A DNA stretch of 64,000 nt, from the NCBI GenBank assembly GCA_907165135.1, contig OU015567.1, forward strand, positions 7,316,001 to 7,380,000, in the 5' to 3' direction. Made by a program: the position numbers and the translations under genes. Origin of the DNA: Oikopleura dioica. Its lineage: Eukaryota > Animalia > Chordata. The notes below the pieces were generated by a model. That model did no database searches and was not told the origin of the DNA. It was given only the letters and a program-made list of their open reading frames with translations. Shown piece by piece: positions 34,048 through 57,719 of this stretch (within the stretch, counting starts at the first letter, position 1; each line of letters begins with the position of its first letter).

Positions 34048-37000
34048 TTATGTAAAGAGCCGTTGGAGGTTATTGGCCTTGTAGTCGGTTCTGAGCTTGA
34101 CGAAATTGTGAAGCACATTCTTGTCCAGATTTGCGAGCTGATCTCCAGTGCAGACTTGTCTGAGATTCTCTGGAACAGCAATCAACAGGTTGCACAAAGC
34201 ATGGAGGGTGTCGAACTTGGAATCAACGAGAACAGAGTTGAGCGATTTTGCGGCAGTTCTGTATTCTTTTATGTCGCAGATGGCCAGCATTCCACCCATG
34301 GAGGAAAATTGGAAAGCTAAAGGAAAATATATGACTTGCAAACTTTTCGAAATAAACCTTGAAGATGGTCATAAATGAGCGTGTAGAATTTTCCACCTAA
34401 GGCAGTTAGGATCATATCAATATTTTCGCCATCAAGATGCTTTTTCATAGAAGAAATGACCTTGTGGAGGTATTCGACTGCTTTTCGACACGCTGGGGTG
34501 GCTTGAGAGGCGAGCTCGTCAGACAGGAAGTCATTCCGTTTTTGCTCAGATTTTAGGATGTTCTTAGCGAAGCCGATTGCCGACGTAATCGTCTTCTCCA
34601 GAGCATTATCCATAGTACTCTCCATCGCGTCTTTCATGGCTTTCCTAGCCTGGACGGCTTCTGCGTGAATAGGACTCTGCGCAGTCAAGGGCAAAAGATC
34701 ATCGTTGAATTGCTTTTCAAACAAGTGCCACACTGTATTTGCTTCTTGGACGAGCAGAAACATGGACATATCTGGCTCTGCCTTTGGCTCAGCAGCTGGC
34801 GCCTGGCTCAGGCCAAGATCAATCGCGTACTGGACCTGGGCTCGGCAAACTGTGCTGTGTAAAAACCTGTCACAGGTCCTGTTTCCTGTTTTTGGGGAAC
34901 CTGTCTGAGTACCTGTGTAAAATCGGGTAATAATTTGGGCCTGTCCTGTGTACCTGTGTAAAATTGGGGGATAAATTTTTCTTTTGCTGTCCCTGTTCCT
35001 GTTTCTGTCTTAAACAGGCCTGTGTTTCCCGCTCAGGTCCTGACCATAGACAGGTTCCTGTGTAACCAGGTCAGGAACTGCATAAGTCAGGGAAAATGTA
35101 TAAAGAAATCAATAGCGAAAGACGAGAAAAAGAGTACAATAATCAAAATTACCGATAAATTCGCGTCTTTTTGTTTCTTTGTAATATTTTTTCTCAGAAA
35201 TTTCCTGTTTTTTTGTCCTGTCACAGGGCCTGTTTCCTGTTTTCTGGCCCGCTCAGACCTGTTCAGGCAGGCCCTGACCTGTGTAACCTGTTTGATAAGC
35301 TGTGTGAAAAAACCTGTCTGAGTACCTGTCTAAAATCAGGATATTTTTGCTTCCTGACCTGTGTACCTGTGTAAAATATGGGACAGAATTTTTTTTTCCT
35401 GTTCCTGTGTCTGTTCCTGACACAGTTTGCCGAGCCCAGGTACTGGACATGTTGCTTGATCAAAAACTCCAAAAGTATGTTGAAAATCTTCAACCCATTC
35501 TCAGCAATCGAATTGGTTGGAGAAAGCATTCCGCAACGTCTAAATGCCGAGTGGGTCTCTTGCAAGACGGAAGCAGCAAGCTCCTCGGAAATTAGAATTT
35601 CAACCTTGCGGTTGTCAGAGCCGAATATTGACCCGACTTTTGATGCCATTTCGGAGCCCAAGCCGCGTTTCTCGTGACCTTGGCGTTCGTAATAACGATC
35701 AAGGAGCTCTTTTGACCTCTTTTTGAGGAACATTTCTTCATCAGAAAGATAACTGTAAATAGAATGCGGACTGTAGAAGATGAGTAATCGTTAGCTAAAC
35801 ACTCAGATACACAAATCCAGCATAGAATGGACATAAAATCACTGAATGGCGTCTCTGAATGTCTGACTAAAGAATTCTCAAGGGTTTCAAACTTTCTCTA
35901 CGGTATGCAAAAATTTGCAATAAAACTAGTCTCATCGGATGAAATCGAATTTGTGATGAGCGAATTCGTCGGCCGCAAATTATGTCCTGCGCGGTGTATT
36001 GCTCCGGGGGACAAAATAAAAATTTATCTTGTCGCATACGCAGCTGAATTATGCCACTTTCCGATTTCCGCTTCAATTTGGCGGTGAGCGACAAAGAGTG
36101 TGATGGATATCGGGGCGCCTTCAGGTGGGCCCCCTTCGATGTTCCATATGAGTTGAGACATGTGTGGTGATAAGAATAACATGGCAATAAATAGAAAACA
36201 GCGCATCCTTTCCTAGAGATAAAGTCGTCGAAGACGGATCGTTGAAGCTTCTTCGTGAATGTCGAATCTTTGTAAGAGTTTTATAGTGTTAGCTGATGAT
36301 ATTTTGTATGAAAATAATAAACTCTTTCCTGATCCAGGTCGGTGTTTACTCAGAGCTGCAGAGAGCGTTGATGTCTTCTCGTACAACTTATGACATTCCG
36401 ATAGATAGAGCTCCAAGTTCTTTCTTTTCAGCGGGTCAAGTTTTCCATGAATGTACTCTCCCAATTGATTGTCGTAGCAGCTCTGGATCAGTTTCCCCAG
36501 CACTTGTTCTGGCGAGTTGAACACCTTCGAAATCTGCGGCGATTTTCCATCGATGAGCTGCGTTATTTGCTCAAAAATACTTTCATCCGCTTCGATTTGC
36601 TTCAGCGCTTCTTCCACATACGCATCCACGCAGAGCTGATAGTTCTGGTAGCGACTGAGTGCAGAGTTTGAAATGCTCGCAAATGCTCGCGAGCGAAAAG
36701 AGCGAGAGCAAAAATTTATCATTGCTCTGAGAGCAGGGGAGCGGGAGCATGAAAATGAGTTGGCTCGAGAGCCAAAAGAGCACGAGCACAAATTTGAACC
36801 CGCTCGCGAGCGCAGAGAGCACGAGCGCATATGTCAGAAATGCTCGGGAGCTAGACGAGCGGGAGCGGCTGCTCTCGTGCTCGCCATGGAATTGACTCAC
36901 GAGCGGCTCGCGAGCAAAATTAAAAGAGTAATTTTTTTGCATAATTATTCACTTTCATAAATAAATTTCTTTGAGGATCTATTTTTGGTGTTTTCGTATG

Positions 37001-39269
37001 TATATTCGTTATGTAAGCTTCATTAGGGCCGTAATCTCGGCAGCAGAATGCGAAAAGCCGAGAGTAAACAGATAAAACATGCCCACCGCGAGGTGCTAAC
37101 TCCTGTGACAGAGACTCATATGGAATTAGTCACGGGGCCGCCGAATCATTTTAGGCCCTTGAAAGCTGCTCGCGAGTCAGTTTTTTCAGCTCGAGAGCCG
37201 ATCGAGCGAGAGCACAATTCGACCAGTGCTCGAGAGCCAAGAGAGCGAGAGCGCGAAATGAAATGCGCTCGCGAGCGCAAAGAGCGCGAACTCTGAAATA
37301 AATGTGCTCGGGAGCACAAAGAGCATCATGCTCGTGCTCGCTCGCTCTCAAGTGAGCCGCTCGCGAGTCACGAAAATTTCAAACTCTGACTGAGTGTCTC
37401 GGCAGTGAGCTGCATTTGCTCGATGTCGTTGTTTTCTCCTGCAGAGCGGAATTTGTTGAGCAGTTCTTTTTCGACTTTTTTGTATTGGTTGAGGATCGAG
37501 AGTTTTACTTCTTGGAAGTTTGAGTCTAAAATTCATTGATGAAAAAAGCGTCTTATTGAAATCATTCGTGACAGATTTTATATTTACCAGGGAGCTCTTG
37601 GGCAATAAGATGCAGTTTTCTGACGACATCAGCGGTTTCGTTGATTCTGTGTGGATTCGTAAGAACATCTTGATCGAGGGAAACAAAATTAAACCTACCC
37701 AATGCTGTAATTATTCAGCACGAGACCAGAATTAACGCTAAATTATTGAAATGCATTCACCATATAGACAATCATATGATATGATTAATATCGTATCGTA
37801 TTTATCATATATAATATAATGTTGTGTGTTTTCGTCGTTTCCTGAATTTACATTTCCCGAAAGAAATTCAGAAAAATAGCCCATCAATCGCTGCGCATCC
37901 GCGGCATGCTCTCTCGGCGTGTTGACCCCTTCCAGCTGTTCACCAAGATGGACAACTCTCGCGGCAACGGCGGATATGCGCTCCTCCAGATCTTGGAAAC
38001 TCTGGAAAGCCTGCTGCTGATGACGCTGAAGTTCTTGAATCCTCTCAGCATGGCGTTTTCCACTGCTGCGCAAGTCGGCCTCCAGCTTTTGGGATTTTTT
38101 CTCCAGTTTTGAGTCCAAAAGTCGAAGTTCTAAAAAATGTCTCTAGAACATTGCTGAATATAGGGTTGTTTTTTAAAAAGTAAATCAGTTTTGAAAAGAT
38201 GCCCGGAGCGCCGGAAAAAGGAAAAGTATTCAATAAAATCTAGTTTTTTTCTACAAAAGAAAAAGATTTAAAGCTCGTATATTCGTAATAAAATCTGCGT
38301 AATTGAATATTCTAACGGAAGCCACGCCAAATATAGTGCACCAAAATGCCATCTGGCGAGAAACAATTCGAAAAGAAACAAGATGCCAAAAACTTTACAC
38401 TGATTATCACATAAATCCACATAAAAAGATTCACAATATTACAGGTAAACTCATCCTAACCACTACACAGTAATGATTCGAATTCAGGCAAGCCTAACTC
38501 GTTACACGATACCGCTGAGGGTGAAGAAGATCCTAATTTTTTGCATATTATGAGAGAAATCCGCGTCGAGCCAAGAAAAAAGTACGAGTTTCCCGTCACT
38601 GAGAGCCAAGAAATTGGCTGGGAGTCGCGGCCCCTTCTAGATGGCAACACTAACAGTAAGTTGAAATCCTTCATAACTAAAAACAAACGGTAACCTTAGA
38701 CTTTGCATGGAATGATGATCGACTTCGTTTCCCTGTGGCTAATACTGACATTTCAAAGTACAAAGACGCCGAGTGGAAGATCAAGGAACAAATGAAAATC
38801 AATCAAGGCTAGGACTTTTTTAATTGTTGCTCTCCGAAACTGTAAATAAAAACGATACTCCCTTATCAAGAAACAGTAAAGACTGAAATGTTCAACAAAG
38901 ACAATTCAGCCTTCATAATAACTTTACCTTGAATATGATTGGAAAACTCATCGAACAGAACTTGTGGATCGAAAGTAGTTTCCGAAGACGCGCCACTTCG
39001 CCAGGCCAGCCTTTCTTTTATGAGTTGACATTTCGACTGGCGAGAAAATAAAGATACAGCTTACATTAGCGTCATTTCTAACGCTTTCCATAAACTTTGT
39101 GGAACAAAGAGTAACTTCGTCAGAAAGGCTCAAGATCGACGACGGACCCGGTTAAACTTATAAAATGAGCTAAGAAAATCAATAATCAAATGACTGTAAC
39201 TTTTCCTATGTACTGATCAACATCAAACGGATTATTCTCCGACTCATCGAAAATCTCCACATTCGACAT
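34048..39269 (-). CDS. EXOC5: Exocyst complex component 5 (Sec10)
   Basis: N-term MSNVEIFD...[14 protein letters not shown]; [15 protein letters not shown]; [16 protein letters not shown]; C-term [14 protein letters not shown]...[11 protein letters not shown]...[16 protein letters not shown]. Two transposons sit in coding exons. Confidence 0.95.
34836..35439. mobile_element. 604-bp MITE with 9-bp TSD inside an EXOC5 coding exon
   Basis: 19-bp TIR CTGGGCTCGGCAAACTGTG / CACAGTTTGCCGAGCCCAG; TSD GTACTGGAC at 34827-34835 and 35440-35448; CCTGT/ACAGG internal repeats. Superfamily uncertain. Confidence 0.95.
36662..37388. mobile_element. 727-bp hAT-like MITE inside an EXOC5 coding exon
   Basis: 13-bp TIR CAGAGTTTGAAAT / ATTTCAAACTCTG; 8-bp TSD ACTGAGTG at 36654-36661 and 37389-37396; GAGC/GCTC internal repeats. 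Confidence 0.95.
38346..38812 (+). CDS. FAM183A: FAM183/CFAP144 ciliary microtubule protein, nested antisense in EXOC5 intron 2
   Basis: KPNSLHD...DPNFLHIM...[22 protein letters not shown]...[16 protein letters not shown] resembles FAM183 (KPMSWHD...KKYPEAQTENQEIGWD...SDITLYK). Confidence 0.8.
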
Positions 39270-51565: not shown

Positions 51566-54500
51566 CTACTGGCCGTTTTGGCCGAAACGAACGGGAGCAC
51601 CAGTTGAGCCGGTCGAGTTTTGAAGCTTTTGGTAAAACGACGAGCGCCAGATTCCATCGCGAATGCGCGGTTGGAACTCTCCTTTGGGCACACCCGTGTA
51701 GAGGGGCCACTGGTTCGTGTCTTCCCGCTCTGGAGGGAGGTTCTTGTCGGGGAGAACTCCCAGAAGCGTTTTCGACCATTTCCACCTAAGAAAATAGATT
51801 TTAAATTCAGCTAGATGAGATCAAGGAGGAATGTGAGCACCCTAGAGCTAAAGAATTTCTCGAGAGATTACCATGGTCTCGATTTTCCTTTTGTGTCCGA
51901 TTCATTAAAGAGGCTTTGTTGTTGATATAGTACTGTTGCCATTCGCGTTGCGGGAAATAGTATTTCTCGAGCGCCTTGCGCGCCGCAAACTTCTCCGCCA
52001 GCTGGATCGACGGCCCGTGACCTTGAATAAAGAAAAGTAAGTTGAAACGACGTCAGATGTGCTCATAATACTAACGATCATAAATTATCAACGCTATTTT
52101 CGTAAATCATTTAATCGCCGAGTTTTACTTATTTCATTTGATCTCGTAAATCAAACGGATATTCATCAAAACCGAGCTTTTTCTTGTGGCTGCCTAAAGA
52201 AGATCGATATTTTTATATTTGTCTGGCTAGAACTTTTAATTTTTCGACCAGCTGTTAATATCAAGACATCACAAGAATTTTAACTAGATAGACAAACTCT
52301 TGAAAGTCAATCAATCTCACGAGACTACTCAATTTTGATCAACATCCTTTTGATTTACGAGATCAAATAAAATTGGCGAAACTCGGCGATGAACAAAATG
52401 ATTTACGAATAAAGATTGTTTCCGTCAAAACTTATTATTCAATAAACGGTACCTTCTCCGATTCTCTCGCCTCTGAAGTAGACTTCCACTCTGTAACGCA
52501 TCTTTGACGAGCTTGTAGAGCTAGAATTGTGTCTGTATTCTGGCAAGTCGGGAGATCCTTCCTCAGGGCGCAATGTGAGGCAACACTGTTGAAGACAGGA
52601 TTTAGGATCGTTCCAAACTTGGCTCATAATAAAGTGCTTCAATCGGGGATAGAAGCAGACTTTCATGAAAACGTCCACGGCAATTATTCCTTGATCTAAT
52701 CGAGTATTAATAAAGTCATTATGAATATAAATTTACCGATGAATAAAGCGCCAATGAAGGATTCCATCAAATCTGCGAGAATTTTTTGTTTCCAGCCCAT
52801 TTTATCTTGGTTTAGTGATTGGCGCGAAATGACAAACTTTTAAAAGTTTTCAAAAGAGTGTTAAATTAAGCATTTTTTTTCTGTCAAAATTTTATTGAAA
52901 CTAGCCTTATCGAGTCCAATTTGCTGGGCAACAAGCGCTTGGGTCGGTGCACCAACCATCGTACATCTCAATAATGTCAGATGCCCCTCATGGTGAAGTG
53001 GAAAGTGCTTGAATAGATATTCCGCGGCAAGAAAGTTGCAGATCGCGTCACCTAAAAACTCAAGCCGCTGATTGTGACCCTTTGTGATGTCATTATATTT
53101 GACGTTCTTGAGGGTGAGTGCTTTGGCGAGGAGGCGAATGTTCTTGAACTTGAGGCCGAGGAGATTCTCCAATTCTGCGCAGCGCTTGAGCACTTTTGAA
53201 GATTCAATCTTGGCTCGGTCGCCGTCCGGGAATTCTTGCTGAAGAGGATGAGCTGGGAAATTGAGCCAGATTCGTTGGAGACTTTCGTCGTCGAATAAAA
53301 CACGGGCGAGGAGGTGGCGAACGGGCTCGAGTCCGCCGTCCATGTAAATAGCACCGAGGACAGCTTCGAAGCAGTTGGCGAGGGCGTTGTTTAGATCCTC
53401 TCGTTTGGCAAGATCCTGGAGAGAATAAGGTTGGGATTTTTCGGAAGTAACAAACCTGGGAGTGGATGTAGACGAAGTAATCTTCTAGCGTCAATTTTTG
53501 CGCTAGAGCCGCGAGATGAACATTACAAACAAGGGCACATCTCAGCATTGAAAGCGCTCCTTCCCCGAGATGCGGAAACAGATGAAAGATGGAGACGGAA
53601 ACGATGAATCCTAACACAGCATCGCCGAGGAACTCCGGTCGCTCCAAATAGTTAATTGGACTTTCCTTCGGCTCGCTAGTTCCGAGCAATGCCATGACTT
53701 TTATCAACGTAACAATGCCCCTTTTCCGCTCGTACGGACGAGATGGTCCATCCTCGCCGTATTGCGGTTTCCTGATGCCGCAGTTTGTCGTGGAGTTACG
53801 CACGTGATCCGGGTTTTCGCCGTAATTGTAAACTGCTGATGGATGGGTCATCGCTCGCGTGAGCCAGGAGAGATTCTTGAATCGATAACCAAGGATTGTT
53901 TGAAGCGAGTCCAATGAGTGGATGTATCGGAAAATTGGGATAAAAACTTGATCAAAGAATTTGGAAAAAATATTTCAATTTGGAATCAAGGAAGAGAATT
54001 TGGATCCCTGCCTGATATGATGAGTTACGACGGGCAATAAAAATGCATGAGCCGCCATGTCCGGGAAAATACCGGTAAGTCGAAAGTTTTCGCAGGAGAT
54101 TTCGTTTGTAACTTCGCGCTGCATGTCGGCCATTCGGCGCATCTTCTGAAGAAGAACTTCCAAATCACGGATTTTTGACCAATGCTGTTCTTGAATACGC
54201 GGCTTGTTCGTAATTAAATGTCGGTATTTCTGATAGGTCCTGTACACTTTCTGATAAACAGGGTCGCCAGCGTAGCTCAAGTTCGCCGGACGCACGCCAA
54301 AGTGCACAATTATGGGCCAACGGTGTTCTTTGTTCGCAGCCCCGGTCATGGTTTTCTCCCGGTCGAGTTGGTCAAGGCGAATAGTAGAAGGCTTCTTGCC
54401 AGGGTTCGTGACAAGCTGACCTCGGAAGGTTTTGACAGGGTGGCTATTTTGGATTTGGGGGTTAGTTGGAATTGGATTGGATCCAATCCATTAAGGTTTG

Positions 54501-57500
54501 GATGGAATTTGGATGGCCTGGGTACCGGATTTTGTTGGGGAAAATTGGGCAATTGGGGGAAATTGGGGAATTGGATCCAATAAAAAATATCTCGCTAAAC
54601 TATGCAAAGCAGGGTCATTTTCATGATAAAAATGAACAATTTCGGATAAATAATCATTGTTTTGGCCATGTTGATCTTCTTTTCGGATTAAAACTTACTG
54701 TTTCCGTTCTTCTCAAAGTACTAAAAGCCTTGGAAAAATTGGAAATCCAATTGGATCTAATTGGAATTGGGGATTTTTGGGGAATTGGCTAATAATTGGA
54801 TTGGGTTGGATTTTGGATGGATAGTTACGACTCAAAATTTATTGGATGGAAATTGGATGGCCAGACCCCAAAATTTTGTCCAAAATAGCCACCCTGGGTT
54901 TTGATATAGTTTTCCCAGGTATTGAAATCCGATTCTTGAGAGAATTTTGAAAGATGTTATCCTTATCATTACGGACTATGTCTATAGAAATTTCTTATAA
55001 ATCAAATTTTGATACCAACAGGGTCTAATGTTCAGAATTATGATCGGCATTTGATGCGTGTTTTTTAATTCAGGTAACCCCGTAGGGTTAATCATCAGTA
55101 TGTGCCAGCCCTGAGACATAATCTCCCATTCGTTCTTGGCACGTAGTTTTTAGGTCAGTTCCATATCCGCAAGATAAATCTTCACCCAGATAGCGTCAAG
55201 TGTCCCTATCTATAATTTCATCATTCCTGACCCTATCAGGACTAAGGGAAGACGGAGTTTTCCTCCATTAGGAAATCTTATGGTCTTTCAAAACTCTTCC
55301 TAACAATCTAACGAGGTCATTTGGCTCAATCAGCGGCTTGTTACTGTCGATAAAATACTGCATAATCTGGTCCATTCCCAGCAATTCCAACTGATTGTCA
55401 AGTCCGCGTGATTCGAATCGGGGCAGGAAATAGAAAAATTTTTGGCTAAAAGATGATCCCGGCTCGATTTTGACACTAGGGTCGTTCGAGGGAGTGAGGC
55501 CTTCAATCCAATCGTAGAGTTCTAGTGTGTCTTTGAAGAAAAAGTCCGAGAATAGTTCCAGGTCGGCAAGGCAAAATGAGGTGGGGGCAGGTTCGGGAAG
55601 CAGGGTGATAGCGTGCTCATTGTGGTATCTAAAGATTGACACGGTAAGAATCAGAGGGGATGGTTTTATTCGACCTGGTGACTGGTATTGTTGGCACTTT
55701 TGACAAGTCCCGATGGGAGAAAATTGAATACCCGGCAAATCGGAATGTCTTGTTGTTGTAGCTGATTTTAGTAGTGATATGATCCTTGAAGGCAAAATTC
55801 TTGAGAGGACTGACAGTGATTCTATAGTGGAACAGCTTATCGAGGTTGTTGCTTTTGGCAGGGAGAGCGGGAGGCTGGATTTCTTGTGGATAGACGCCGT
55901 GGTTGATTCCGTGTTGCTGGTCCATTTCGCATTTGCACAAAGGGCCGTCGTTGGCCATTTTGGGCTCATTGTACCAGAGCTCGGCACACATGCGGTCCGG
56001 GTGATTCTTGATTGTTCTGATGTACTTGATCAGTTCGCCAGCTTTGTTGAGGATTTTCTTCGTGTCTCCTTGGAGCAGCGACTTTCTCTTCTTCTTTTCT
56101 GACTTGCCGAAGACGCCGGCTTTTTCCAAGTCCTTTCTGAACTCTTTGATAACTTGATAGCCTATCGTGTCTTCTTGGCCATCGGCAGCTTCTTCTAGCG
56201 CATCGTTGAGGGTATCTCCGTCGACCGTTTGGCTTTCAGTGGCAGTTTCTTCTTCTGTAGCAGCTTCAGTCTCTTCATTTCCATTTTCCTCGTTTGTTTC
56301 TAGGTCATCTTCGCATATGAGTAAATTAGTACCGTTGTCATCATCGGAATCGACATCTGAGAATTCATCTTGCTCGTTTTCAGGAGTTCCGGAGAGGATG
56401 GCCGCTCTTTTTCGTCGCAAAACCTGAAGAGAGAAAGTTCAGGGGGAAAACTAAAGCTGCATACCTTCGGAGCTTGCCAGGTTGAATCAGATTGGGCAGT
56501 GTGTCTTTGTGAAAGAGCTTGAAACTCTTCGCGGACAGGCTCAAGTGACGGCAAGCTCTCGCGCTTTTCAGTGAAATTCAGCAAGGGAGAATAGTTGTCC
56601 GTTGGTGCGGAGATAACTTTTTTATTCGCAACAGGTGCAGGAGGCGGTTTGGGAACACTTCCATGGAGGAGTTTTTTCTCGTAGTTTTCGCGATTCCTTT
56701 CTCTGTTTTCAGGTCTTGGAGAAGGGCTCTTGTTGGCACTTTCAATCTTTAAAATAAATAAAACGGAGCCCATTCCTTCGGGAACTTCCAGTTCTAGTGT
56801 CCCGATCTCTGTTCCTCGATCTACTCCTATCTCTAGTAGCATCTCCATTCATCATTCCATTGCGAGATCCAGATCTGGAATCTCTATCTCTTGAATTAGA
56901 GAAATCTCTCGAGCGTTTTCGGCTATCACTTCTCGGCTCTGGGAAGCCTAGTAAGCGTGAAACAAAGGAAAAGAAAAGTGATCAACGTACCATCGTCGAT
57001 TCGCTCGAGTTTGACTCTCACAGGAGCTCCTGAAAGTTGAGGCTCTTCTCCTGGTTCTGTTTTGACCCTAGCGGTTGGGTCGAAAGGGATGAAAGAAGAT
57101 CGGTCTTGCCACTCTTGGTCAGTGATGCGCTCGATTTTCACCCGCCCGTTAGTGCTACTTCTGCCTCTATTTTCCTGCTGGTCGAACGTTTCCTCTCGTG
57201 AGTGACCCCACTGTGGCAACTCTCGCGGTTCTCTAAATCTATCCACGCGAGCGTTGCCACTGTACTCATCACGGGAGGAGCTATTTCGCGAAGTTCTAGC
57301 GCAATTCTGAGGCTCAGAAGGGAAGCCTGGCTCTTCGAATTCGCGCTTGAGAATCGGTTTTTTAGAATTGGAATTTGTCGTGTTGGAACTGTTCGGGGGC
57401 GCTTGGAGCAGCTTGAGCGGTGGGGAGGGACTGTTGCTAGAAGAATCAGTGTTGGACACTTGAAGATTGTTGGAGGCGATGACGCAGGTGGCAATTTTTT

Positions 57501-57719
57501 TCATTGGCATATCGTGACGGCTTTTAGCAGTATAACGAACGGAAGCGTTTAGCGTGGGCAGTATTTGATTCTCACAGACTGACTGAAGAATAGTGTTGCT
57601 TTTCAAAAGAAAAAAGGAGAGCAAACCTTGGTGAAGAAAATGGTGCCATCAATGAATCCAAAATCGGCATCGAGGGCAGTGACGATCCCGACAAAAATAT
57701 CGCCACTGTCATTAGTCAT
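51566..57719 (-). CDS. DROSHA: Drosha ribonuclease III, apparently with an extra N-terminal S1-like domain
   Basis: ELWYNEP...NDGPLCKC, LFHYRITVSP, PIIVHFGVRPANLSYAGDP, two RNase III domains (ERPEFLGDAVL; NQRLEFLGDA), dsRBD (YRVEVYFRGERIGEG...GPSIQLAE). The 3' end is approximate. Confidence 0.95.
54436..54896. mobile_element. 461-bp hAT-like MITE inside a DROSHA coding exon
   Basis: 18-bp TIR CAGGGTGGCTATTTTGGA / TCCAAAATAGCCACCCTG; perfect 8-bp TSD GGTTTTGA at 54428-54435 and 54897-54904; ATTGG internal repeats. Confidence 0.95.

Follow-up and report, generated by a model that had tools for sequence, protein, structure and literature searches.

Does a transposon that interrupts a coding exon in a reference genome mark a broken gene copy, or an intron at the moment of its birth? 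This question arises at the gene for Drosha, the enzyme with which microRNA production begins, in a stretch of 64,000 nucleotides of Oikopleura dioica DNA (henceforth termed the window), where an exon of the central domain is split by a short element with inverted ends. Oikopleura is renowned for fast intron gain and non-canonical splicing, and an earlier note on this sequence proposed that the element is a hAT MITE that can be spliced out of the Drosha message in frame. As a whole, that interpretation is partly supported by the evidence set out here.

The interrupted Drosha exon and its element

The minus-strand region 54427-53978 matches structures of human Drosha (E 7e-41) from the RG/KG of KGMIVTNPG onward. 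Two PF00636 domains and one PF00035 domain lie downstream of this central-domain exon, and PF26050 (Helical_CED_Drosha) is present in the open reading frames (ORFs) of relatives; an exact-protein look-up of the window's own 124-aa ORF returned no record. The insertion point falls between the codons for T and F (...WENYIKT/FRGQLVTNPGKK; a slash marks a junction here and in Table 1). With the element removed, the reading becomes SDFNTWENYIKT/FRGQLVTNPGKK, which is gapless against human Drosha and seven wild Oikopleura contigs, and the unbroken ORF of a relative (...EAEWEKYIDRFRGQLVTNPGKK) aligns without gaps to human ...ELEWQKYAEECKGMIVTNPGTK, so that the empty site had been read correctly. Equally sound was the expectation that an unspliced allele is truncated before both RNase III domains: translation entering the element meets a stop after 23 codons.

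Table 1. Features of the Drosha locus in coordinates of the window.
Feature	Position	Strand	Basis or remark
Drosha gene: central domain, RNase IIIa, RNase IIIb, dsRBD	approx. 52442..57700	-	
Upstream intron, 365 nt, GA-AG	54935..55299	-	joint 54934>55300 in X4 mRNA contig
Interrupted exon, 5' piece, 38 nt, ..SDFNTWENYIKT	54897..54934	-	X4 mRNA contig joins 55300 upstream and 54427 downstream
TSD copy, identical to the copy at 54428..54435	54897..54904	.	
TIR, high-coordinate arm, identical 18 nt on the minus strand	54879..54896	-	
Proposed GT donor in TIR, AGG/GTGGCT	54891..54892	-	arithmetic; use not observed in X4 contig
hAT-like MITE, 461 bp, non-autonomous	54436..54896	.	perfect TIRs; no protein family in ORFs; multi-copy depth
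TIR, low-coordinate arm, CAGGGTGGCTATTTTGGA	54436..54453	+	18 nt
TSD copy, GGTTTTGA on +, tcaaaacc on gene strand	54428..54435	.	
Interrupted exon, 3' piece, 416 nt, FRGQLVTNPGKK...VVTHHI	54012..54427	-	human Drosha match; X4 contig, 0 differences
Proposed AG acceptor in downstream exon, CCTTCCGAG/G	54421..54422	-	arithmetic; use not observed in X4 contig
Downstream intron, 84 nt, GC..CG (or GG..CC)	53928..54011	-	joint 53927>54012 in X4 contig, 1-nt ambiguity

An 8-bp target-site duplication (TSD), short CAG-type terminal inverted repeats (TIRs), small size, lack of transposase coding and multiple copies together support, on sequence grounds, the placement of the element as a hAT-like MITE, the class assigned to it by the earlier note. 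The TIRs of hAT elements are short (about 10-25 nt) and begin with CAG or YARNG; here the two 18-nt arms are 100% complementary and start with CAGGG, and the TIR 18-mer occurs at two sites in the window, both of them element ends, against 0.03 expected from shuffles. The hAT target consensus nTnnnnAn is a weak preference, and the TSD (GGTTTTGA / TCAAAACC) departs from it, a departure from a mere preference that does not exclude membership in hAT.

The element is non-coding with a GC content of 38%, and none of its ORFs gives a significant match in Pfam. An Rfam search over 53900-55400 likewise gave no significant match to it, a MIR5291-like match (E 0.71) being rejected, and BLAST of the element against the window found no further copy. 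The window contains no autonomous hAT partner that encodes a transposase. Judged by word depth, about 50-150 times the flank value in contigs of two DNA data sets near-identical to the window (X2 and X3), the element is a member of a high-copy family. The present copy differs from every other family copy compared at 54491, 54519 and 54789. JGI metagenome contigs carrying the TIR 18-mer were dismissed as chance: the 19 matches were single, their likeness ended at the seed, and 0 family copies were recovered. The predicted RNA fold of the element pairs both TIRs as a terminal stem (-106.7 kcal/mol, z -4.2).

The site in DNA of other animals

In X2, one contig carries ACCTCGGAA immediately before 54897, which is an empty junction. 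Approached from the opposite side, contigs of X2 and X3 match the window up to 54435 and then continue with 13 letters unlike the element. In the bin 54344-54430, total depth equals that of a single empty-type contig in each of the two data sets; no filled-junction contig was found there in either, and the depth leaves no room for one. The site is also empty in wild contigs that are about 94% identical (L001, L002, L031) or about 77% identical (L028-L030), P0004 has a continuous ORF across it, and the TSD octamer stands only once at the empty site of X2 and the three closer wild contigs. The earlier note had suggested looking for the element in other isolates; X2, X3 and seven wild contigs all lack it, and the filled junction appears in no second data set. 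The insertion has not reached fixation, the exon being unbroken in other animals that belong to this stock and lineage.

We consider it probable (about 0.62) that the window records a young, polymorphic insertion allele, which reached the reference through the assembly of one heterozygous male. A cut-and-paste hAT-type MITE would recently have entered one Drosha haplotype, duplicating 8 bp of exon between two codons, and assembly of a single, highly heterozygous male with one haplotype kept per locus would then have carried the insertion allele into the reference. The perfect 18-nt TIRs and perfect 8-bp TSD, the anatomy of a fresh insertion, support this explanation. If the window belongs to the Okinawa Oikopleura assembly, its source was one male with a heterozygosity of 3.6%, whose haplotypes were merged into a reference and allelic sets; the same study sequenced another individual as well, together with 50 males pooled for Hi-C (PMC8008620). 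What the earlier note had itself set against its proposal, an assembled allele carried heterozygously, is what fits best: the allele is not fixed, X2 and X3 are empty, and the sequenced male was probably heterozygous at the site.

Taken alone, the insertion allele most likely acts recessively, its function lost or weakened, because reading hits the stop 23 codons into the element; we infer loss of function, for which cryptic splice sites might provide partial rescue at best. Two points sit uneasily with a young insertion allele. Where a gene is essential, its null alleles should be rare, and the three copy-specific positions of the element are harder to reconcile with an origin only a few generations ago, even if rare variants are lost from contigs.

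The mRNA across the site and the introns of the gene

The transcript was followed in X4, a run from the same study as X1, the DNA run of the sequenced male. Its mRNA contig of 4195 nt joins 54897 directly to 54427 and thereby has the exact empty-site sequence. At the site it omits exactly 469 nt, corresponding to the element plus one TSD, with an 8-nt ambiguity that is the TSD itself; three ordinary introns and the 84-nt intron are omitted as well. The possibility that X4 is DNA with a retrocopy was rejected, as the amount of sequence in the run is small and its contig skips five segments, GT-AG introns among them. The run is read as RNA also because, if the window is from the Okinawa assembly, the study behind it filed three RNA-seq libraries. 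That study took its RNA from pools of cultured animals and not from the male whose genome was assembled (PMC8008620), and the visible normal Drosha mRNA would most simply stem from uninterrupted alleles. The RNA run X24 (oligo-dT library, 2026) gave 3 matching reads with 90-95% likeness; it is uninformative here and probably represents another lineage.

The verified intron ends of this Drosha gene are weak or non-canonical (GTCGAA, GA-AG, GC-CG, GTTTGT). The 84-nt intron downstream of the interrupted exon has no AG acceptor, and its excision restores the frame ..HHI-R-YIHSLDSLQ. It is contained in the DNA of X2, X3, L001, L002 and L031, shows no similarity to the element, and has no second copy in the window by BLAST. 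The 365-nt intron upstream carries a conserved box C/D snoRNA candidate at 55151-55230.

Such ends speak for a permissive splicing machinery, and with it for a nascent intron: carriers would splice the element out through GT54892/AG54421 or GG54894/AG54444, make near-normal Drosha and tolerate the allele. The arithmetic of both exits is right, the first giving T-Q-G with a net loss of 1 aa and the second a gain of 6 aa (HHPVKT), and both products are in frame. Precedents are at hand, since splice hints used for gene prediction in Oikopleura accept GA-AG, GC-AG, GG-AG, GT-CG and GT-AA (10.1101/2023.05.09.539028), about 11% of introns in the Okinawa assembly are non-canonical (PMC8008620), and Fritillaria, a related larvacean, splices MITE-derived non-canonical introns (PMC11282704). 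We nevertheless regard splicing of this kind as unlikely. X4, the only mRNA contig across the site, has neither junction and no branch, its RNA being that of pooled animals and not of known carriers, and the allele is missing from the contigs of X2 and X3. The in-frame exits pointed out by the earlier note are no signal in themselves, for such pairs occur at the chance rate of 1/3: near the element ends, the frame is kept by 14 of 42 GN-AG pairs and by 2 of 6 GT-AG pairs. In addition, the form shortened by 1 aa would replace the basic residue (R/K) whose conservation ahead of G-x-[IL]-V-T-N-P-G extends from Oikopleura to human.

The junction in X4 could also be thought to arise from the filled allele by a scar-free route, in which TIR pairing aligns the TSD copies and the element plus one TSD is cut from the pre-mRNA without GT-AG ends, much like euglenid non-conventional introns or the introns that derive from MITEs in Fritillaria. 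The haplotypes are what recommends this idea. Over about 1.6 kb of exon, X4 shows 0 differences from the reference haplotype and agrees with it at each exonic SNP that sets the known empty DNA haplotypes apart: that of X2 departs from the reference at 53807, 53861, 54311 and 54341, and that of X3 at nine or more exonic positions. Exonic SNPs that distinguish the haplotypes include those at 54128, 54176, 54311, 54341, 54398 and 54404. Among the empty DNA copies seen, none had exactly the reference haplotype. The identity of X4 with the reference is the one hint left without explanation, and it counts against the young insertion allele that we prefer. The predicted terminal stem and the excision of the neighbouring 84-nt intron without an AG acceptor can be cited on the same side. 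Still, we find scar-free removal highly improbable. The DNA of X2 and X3 has the very same junction, which makes an empty allele a sufficient and simpler source; the RNA was pooled from culture animals; and contigs retain the majority path only, so that the shared haplotype counts as weak evidence. None of the nine ways to place the junction (CA..CC, CC..AC, CC..AA, AC..AA, AA..AA, AA..CA, AA..TC, CA..GT and TC..TG) has G[T/A/C/G]..AG ends or ends of any class known for Oikopleura, and the 84-nt intron has no TSD-like end repeat, its ambiguity being 1 nt. The broader claim that Okinawan Oikopleura removes TIR-paired MITEs together with one TSD from pre-mRNA, which would render fresh exonic insertions silent on landing, essential genes such as Drosha included, is likewise highly improbable.

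That the element sits at this locus in no animal, as an artefact of assembly or amplification, is scarcely conceivable: the filled junction does appear in no second data set, but a perfect 8-bp target duplication is the mark of real transposition and not of misassembly, 84% of the stretch's sampled words are present in X1, the highest share among the DNA runs, and both long and short reads of the same animal had been used to polish the assembly before publication (PMC8008620).

Implications and known systems

As it stands, the young segregating insertion allele would be a further case of a transposon that disrupts one copy of a gene or, in the best case, weakens it. It cautions that this reference genome includes private, probably deleterious insertion alleles, and that gene models treating such insertions as introns are unproven. 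The locus would gain far greater importance if carriers made normal Drosha mRNA. Because it is a polymorphic MITE in an exon of an essential gene, the insertion offers an ideal natural test of immediate transposon-to-intron conversion, and the segregation of the alleles in laboratory culture makes such a test feasible.

A close likeness is to segregating MITE or DNA-transposon alleles in coding exons, classical insertional mutations such as those caused by Ac/Ds-type hAT elements. They share with the Drosha MITE a short non-autonomous element, an 8-bp TSD and CAG TIRs, as well as a broken ORF, polymorphism among individuals and an empty site that can be exactly restored. Unlike these classical insertions, the Drosha MITE lies in a gene for microRNA processing that is presumably essential, within the extremely compact genome of an animal, and it entered the reference assembly of a single heterozygous individual.

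Introners, too, are MITE-like DNA transposons with TIRs and a TSD in coding exons, and as in the Drosha MITE the element itself contains one candidate splice site, with its partner inside or close to the exon sequence that is duplicated or flanks the insertion. As reviewed in PMC11282704, many introner copies of Micromonas, Aureococcus and others (Huff et al. 2016, Gozashti et al. 2022) are demonstrably spliced, with splice sites formed by element and TSD and the ORF thereby restored. The Drosha MITE differs in that its allele is neither fixed nor common at the position, being absent from X2, X3 and the seven wild contigs. Its exact removal would proceed without usable splice dinucleotides at any of the nine placements; the donor and acceptor pairs proposed earlier were not observed in use, and splicing of the filled allele is only a candidate.

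The MITE introns of Fritillaria borealis come from another larvacean, derive from elements with TIRs and TSDs, and are handled by a spliceosome tolerant of non-GT/AG ends. According to Henriet et al. 2019, as described in PMC11282704 and PMC13326754, they are fixed introns of demonstrated splicing, most of them with AG-AC or AG-AT ends; the Drosha MITE, unlike them, has other ends, is polymorphic, and is at most a putative intron. Non-conventional introns of euglenids resemble it in their pairing inverted repeats, TSD-like junction repeats and non-canonical ends. They belong to a different kingdom and machinery, and the likeness bears solely on the low-probability scar-free removal, which, if true, would be a chordate counterpart of the euglenid introns and a direct path to intron birth.

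Insertion of a hAT-like element into the Drosha exon

The interrupted exon belongs to Drosha. Human Drosha structures align to an open reading frame (ORF) piece at 54427-53978 on the minus strand (E 7e-41), starting at residue 2 of the piece, where RG lies opposite KG of KGMIVTNPGTKPSSVRIDQLDRE; further downstream lie two RNase III domains and a dsRBD. P0004, an ORF of an Oikopleura relative sampled in an ocean metagenome, is unbroken over the site (...EAEWEKYIDRFRGQLVTNPGKK) and aligns without gaps to human ...ELEWQKYAEECKGMIVTNPGTK; the human motif cited in an earlier note, written from the sequence alone, is correct. The window itself reads ...SDFNTWENYIKT / element / FRGQLVTNPGKK, which together with the gapless relative places the element at a codon boundary within an exon that is conserved and otherwise collinear. 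As the note had stated for an unspliced transcript, read-through would truncate the protein 5' of both catalytic domains, at a stop 23 codons inside the element. In another relative (ENA contig P0003, ~79% identical in protein), the ORF starts ...IIFFQ/LDREQ, which suggests a lineage-specific intron lying ~16 codons 3' of the insertion and, with it, that intron positions along this stretch of the gene have a high turnover.

On the minus strand, ...aactatatcaaaacc runs directly into the element start, CAGGGTGGCTATTTTGGA; 461 bp on, the same 18 nt recur as the reverse complement at the element's end, after which the sequence continues tcaaaacc ttccgaggtcag... A repeat finder reports the two 18-nt arms of this terminal inverted repeat (TIR) as 100% complementary, and the 18-mer has only two matches in 64 kb with up to 3 mismatches allowed (0.03 expected). 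hAT transposons are recognised by an 8-bp target-site duplication (TSD) together with a TIR that begins CAG. Both features are present, confirming the note's placement of a MITE within the Drosha exon, and on their basis the element is best described as a hAT-like MITE. The element is AT-rich, contains many short subterminal repeats of the CCAATT / GGATCCAAT type and has no protein-family match. There is no second copy within the 64-kb window, and the 18-nt TIR is absent from 34827-35448 and 36654-37396. In contigs of DNA runs, the word depth of the element is ~50-150x that of its flanks, and element-bearing contigs of the RNA run have other flanks, which points to a high-copy family with copies transcribed inside the RNAs of other genes.

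Features of the interrupted Drosha region (positions in the window; skipped segments are those of the RNA contig of run X4)
Feature	Position	Strand	Description
Skipped segment 1	53415-53454	minus	40 nt; GT-AG if the cut is moved one place on
Skipped segment 2	53928-54011	minus	84 nt; ends GC..CG or GG..CC
Skipped segment 3	54428-54896	minus	469 nt; element plus one TSD copy
Skipped segment 4	54935-55299	minus	365 nt; GA-AG
Skipped segment 5	55629-55674	minus	46 nt; GT-AG
Element	54436-54896		461 bp
TIR arms	54436-54453 / 54879-54896		18 nt each
TSD copies	54428-54435 / 54897-54904		8 bp, identical
Box C/D snoRNA candidate	55151-55230	minus	inside skipped segment 4

Empty sites in DNA and mRNA

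Public runs were searched by sampled words, which gave DNA runs containing 0.56-0.84 of the words and a few RNA runs under the same species label. We compared window 53300-55900 with X2 (other label, 2025), with X3 and the RNA run X4 (both from the study of the best-matching DNA run, X1) and with X24 (raw RNA reads, 2026), which placed just 3 reads on the region and was uninformative. X2 and X3 are DNA, because both run through introns, and of the same lineage as the window, because they differ by only 0.5-1.4%. One X2 contig carries ACCTCGGAA (window 54419-54427) immediately before 54897, i.e., the joined form as DNA. From the opposite side, the match of X2 and X3 contigs ends at 54435 and is followed by 13 extra letters incompatible with the element. 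In X2, the two overhangs (9 and 13 letters) and the 8-bp TSD sum to 30 letters, which is the overlap between adjacent k = 31 contigs, so these contigs are adjoining pieces of a single empty allele. Depth summed over bin 54344-54430 is that of the single empty-type contig (66.5 in X2, 58.6 in X3), and neither data set has a filled-junction contig there. The wild Oikopleura contigs L001, L002 and L031 (~94% identical to the window) read ...AACTACATCAAATCA/TTCCGAGGGCAA with the element absent, and L028-L030, from a lineage ~77% identical, are uninterrupted (...GACTACATCAAGACT/TTCCGTGGTCAG). The presence/absence check that the note had proposed for other isolates thus returned absence in X2, X3 and all of these wild contigs.

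The X4 mRNA is represented by one 4195-nt contig that is unbranched at the insertion site, matches the window without a difference in all its pieces, skips five segments and keeps consistent frames across the joints (...LVRLL-E-SDFNTWENYIKT-FRGQ...VVTHHI-R-YIHSLDSLQ...). Since the 8-nt ambiguity of the 469-nt skip equals the TSD, the mRNA has the exact empty-site sequence. The insertion is most likely a young, non-fixed and probably heterozygous allele.

For the Okinawa Oikopleura genome, one male with 3.6% heterozygosity was sequenced and the 99-Mb primary assembly collapsed to reference and allelic haplotypes; the study also covered another individual as well as 50 males pooled for Hi-C, and its RNA came from pooled embryos and adults of a running culture (PMC8008620). 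Introns of 40-46 nt, GA-AG splicing, relatives in marine metagenomes and a best-matching study that combines DNA with RNA runs are consistent with the window belonging to this assembly. If it does, the joined form as DNA and the pooled-culture RNA lead us to expect that the RNA donors carried an empty allele, which is enough to explain the mRNA. Over ~1.6 kb of exonic sequence, the mRNA contig shows no difference from the filled reference haplotype; the empty haplotype of X2 differs from it at 53807, 53861, 54311 and 54341, and that of X3 at 9 or more sites. This leaves two readings: the same haplotype is common in the culture in an empty form, so that the insertion would be very recent, or the exact mRNA is a product of the filled allele. 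Three private differences of this element copy from every other compared family copy (54491, 54519, 54789) count slightly against an insertion dating back just a few generations. Both the haplotype identity and the private differences are weak points, because contigs follow majority paths and lose rare variants. Scar-free removal at the RNA level would account for the haplotype identity and fits a predicted RNA fold in which the TIRs pair as a terminal stem, as well as the removal of the neighbouring 84-nt intron with no AG at its ends, but we assign it a low probability given that the joined form exists as DNA and an empty allele is a sufficient source.

Proposed splice exits and known systems

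The note had suggested two in-frame splice exits, T-Q-G (-1 aa; GT54892/AG54421) and a +6 aa product (GG54894/AG54444), which translates as +HHPVKT. Their arithmetic holds, yet neither product occurs in the X4 contig with its exact empty-site junction; the observation is confirmed and its interpretation supported in part. Near the element ends lie 14 GN donors and 3 AG acceptors, and the in-frame share (14 of 42 pairs; 2 of 6 GT-AG pairs) is the one in three expected by chance. In the -1 aa product, the basic residue before G-x-[IL]-V-T-N-P-G, conserved in all relatives and human, would be replaced. Another in-frame option joins the upstream GA donor to AG 54421, skipping the 38-nt piece (net -45 nt). 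The verified splice sites of the gene are weak (GTCGAA, GA-AG, GC-CG, GTTTGT), making putative cryptic splicing in carriers plausible.

A segregating DNA-transposon insertion within an exon is of a kind already known. Relatives of interest are introners and, in the larvacean Fritillaria, non-canonical introns derived from MITEs (PMC11282704, PMC13326754). Both are defined by proven splicing of the gene that carries the element, by boundaries that the element or TSD supplies, and by fixation. The Drosha element shows neither such boundaries nor fixation, and the mRNA that lacks it exactly has a DNA counterpart in X2 and X3. With one gene per 3.7 kb (PMC8008620), the Okinawa genome is so compact that chance young insertions are bound to strike exons often.

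Neighbouring introns

The 84-nt intron, non-canonical at both ends with a 1-nt ambiguity and no AG acceptor, is present in DNA of X2, X3, L001, L002 and L031 and missing in a more distant lineage with a continuous ORF (P0002); GT-CG is among the listed Oikopleura splice-site hints (10.1101/2023.05.09.539028). Upstream of the interrupted exon, the mRNA contig defines a 365-nt GA-AG intron (TTAG/GAAGAG...CTCAAG/AA), and P0004, a more distant relative, has no intron at this position. Inside the 365-nt intron lies the snoRNA candidate (C box AUGAUGA, D box CUGA), which matches Rfam RF00530 snoMe28S-Cm2645 at 31.6 bits (under the gathering score; E 3.8e-4). The candidate is near-invariant in three Oikopleura lineages within an intron that is not alignable around it, so that Drosha seems to be the host gene of a conserved snoRNA encoded in this intron.
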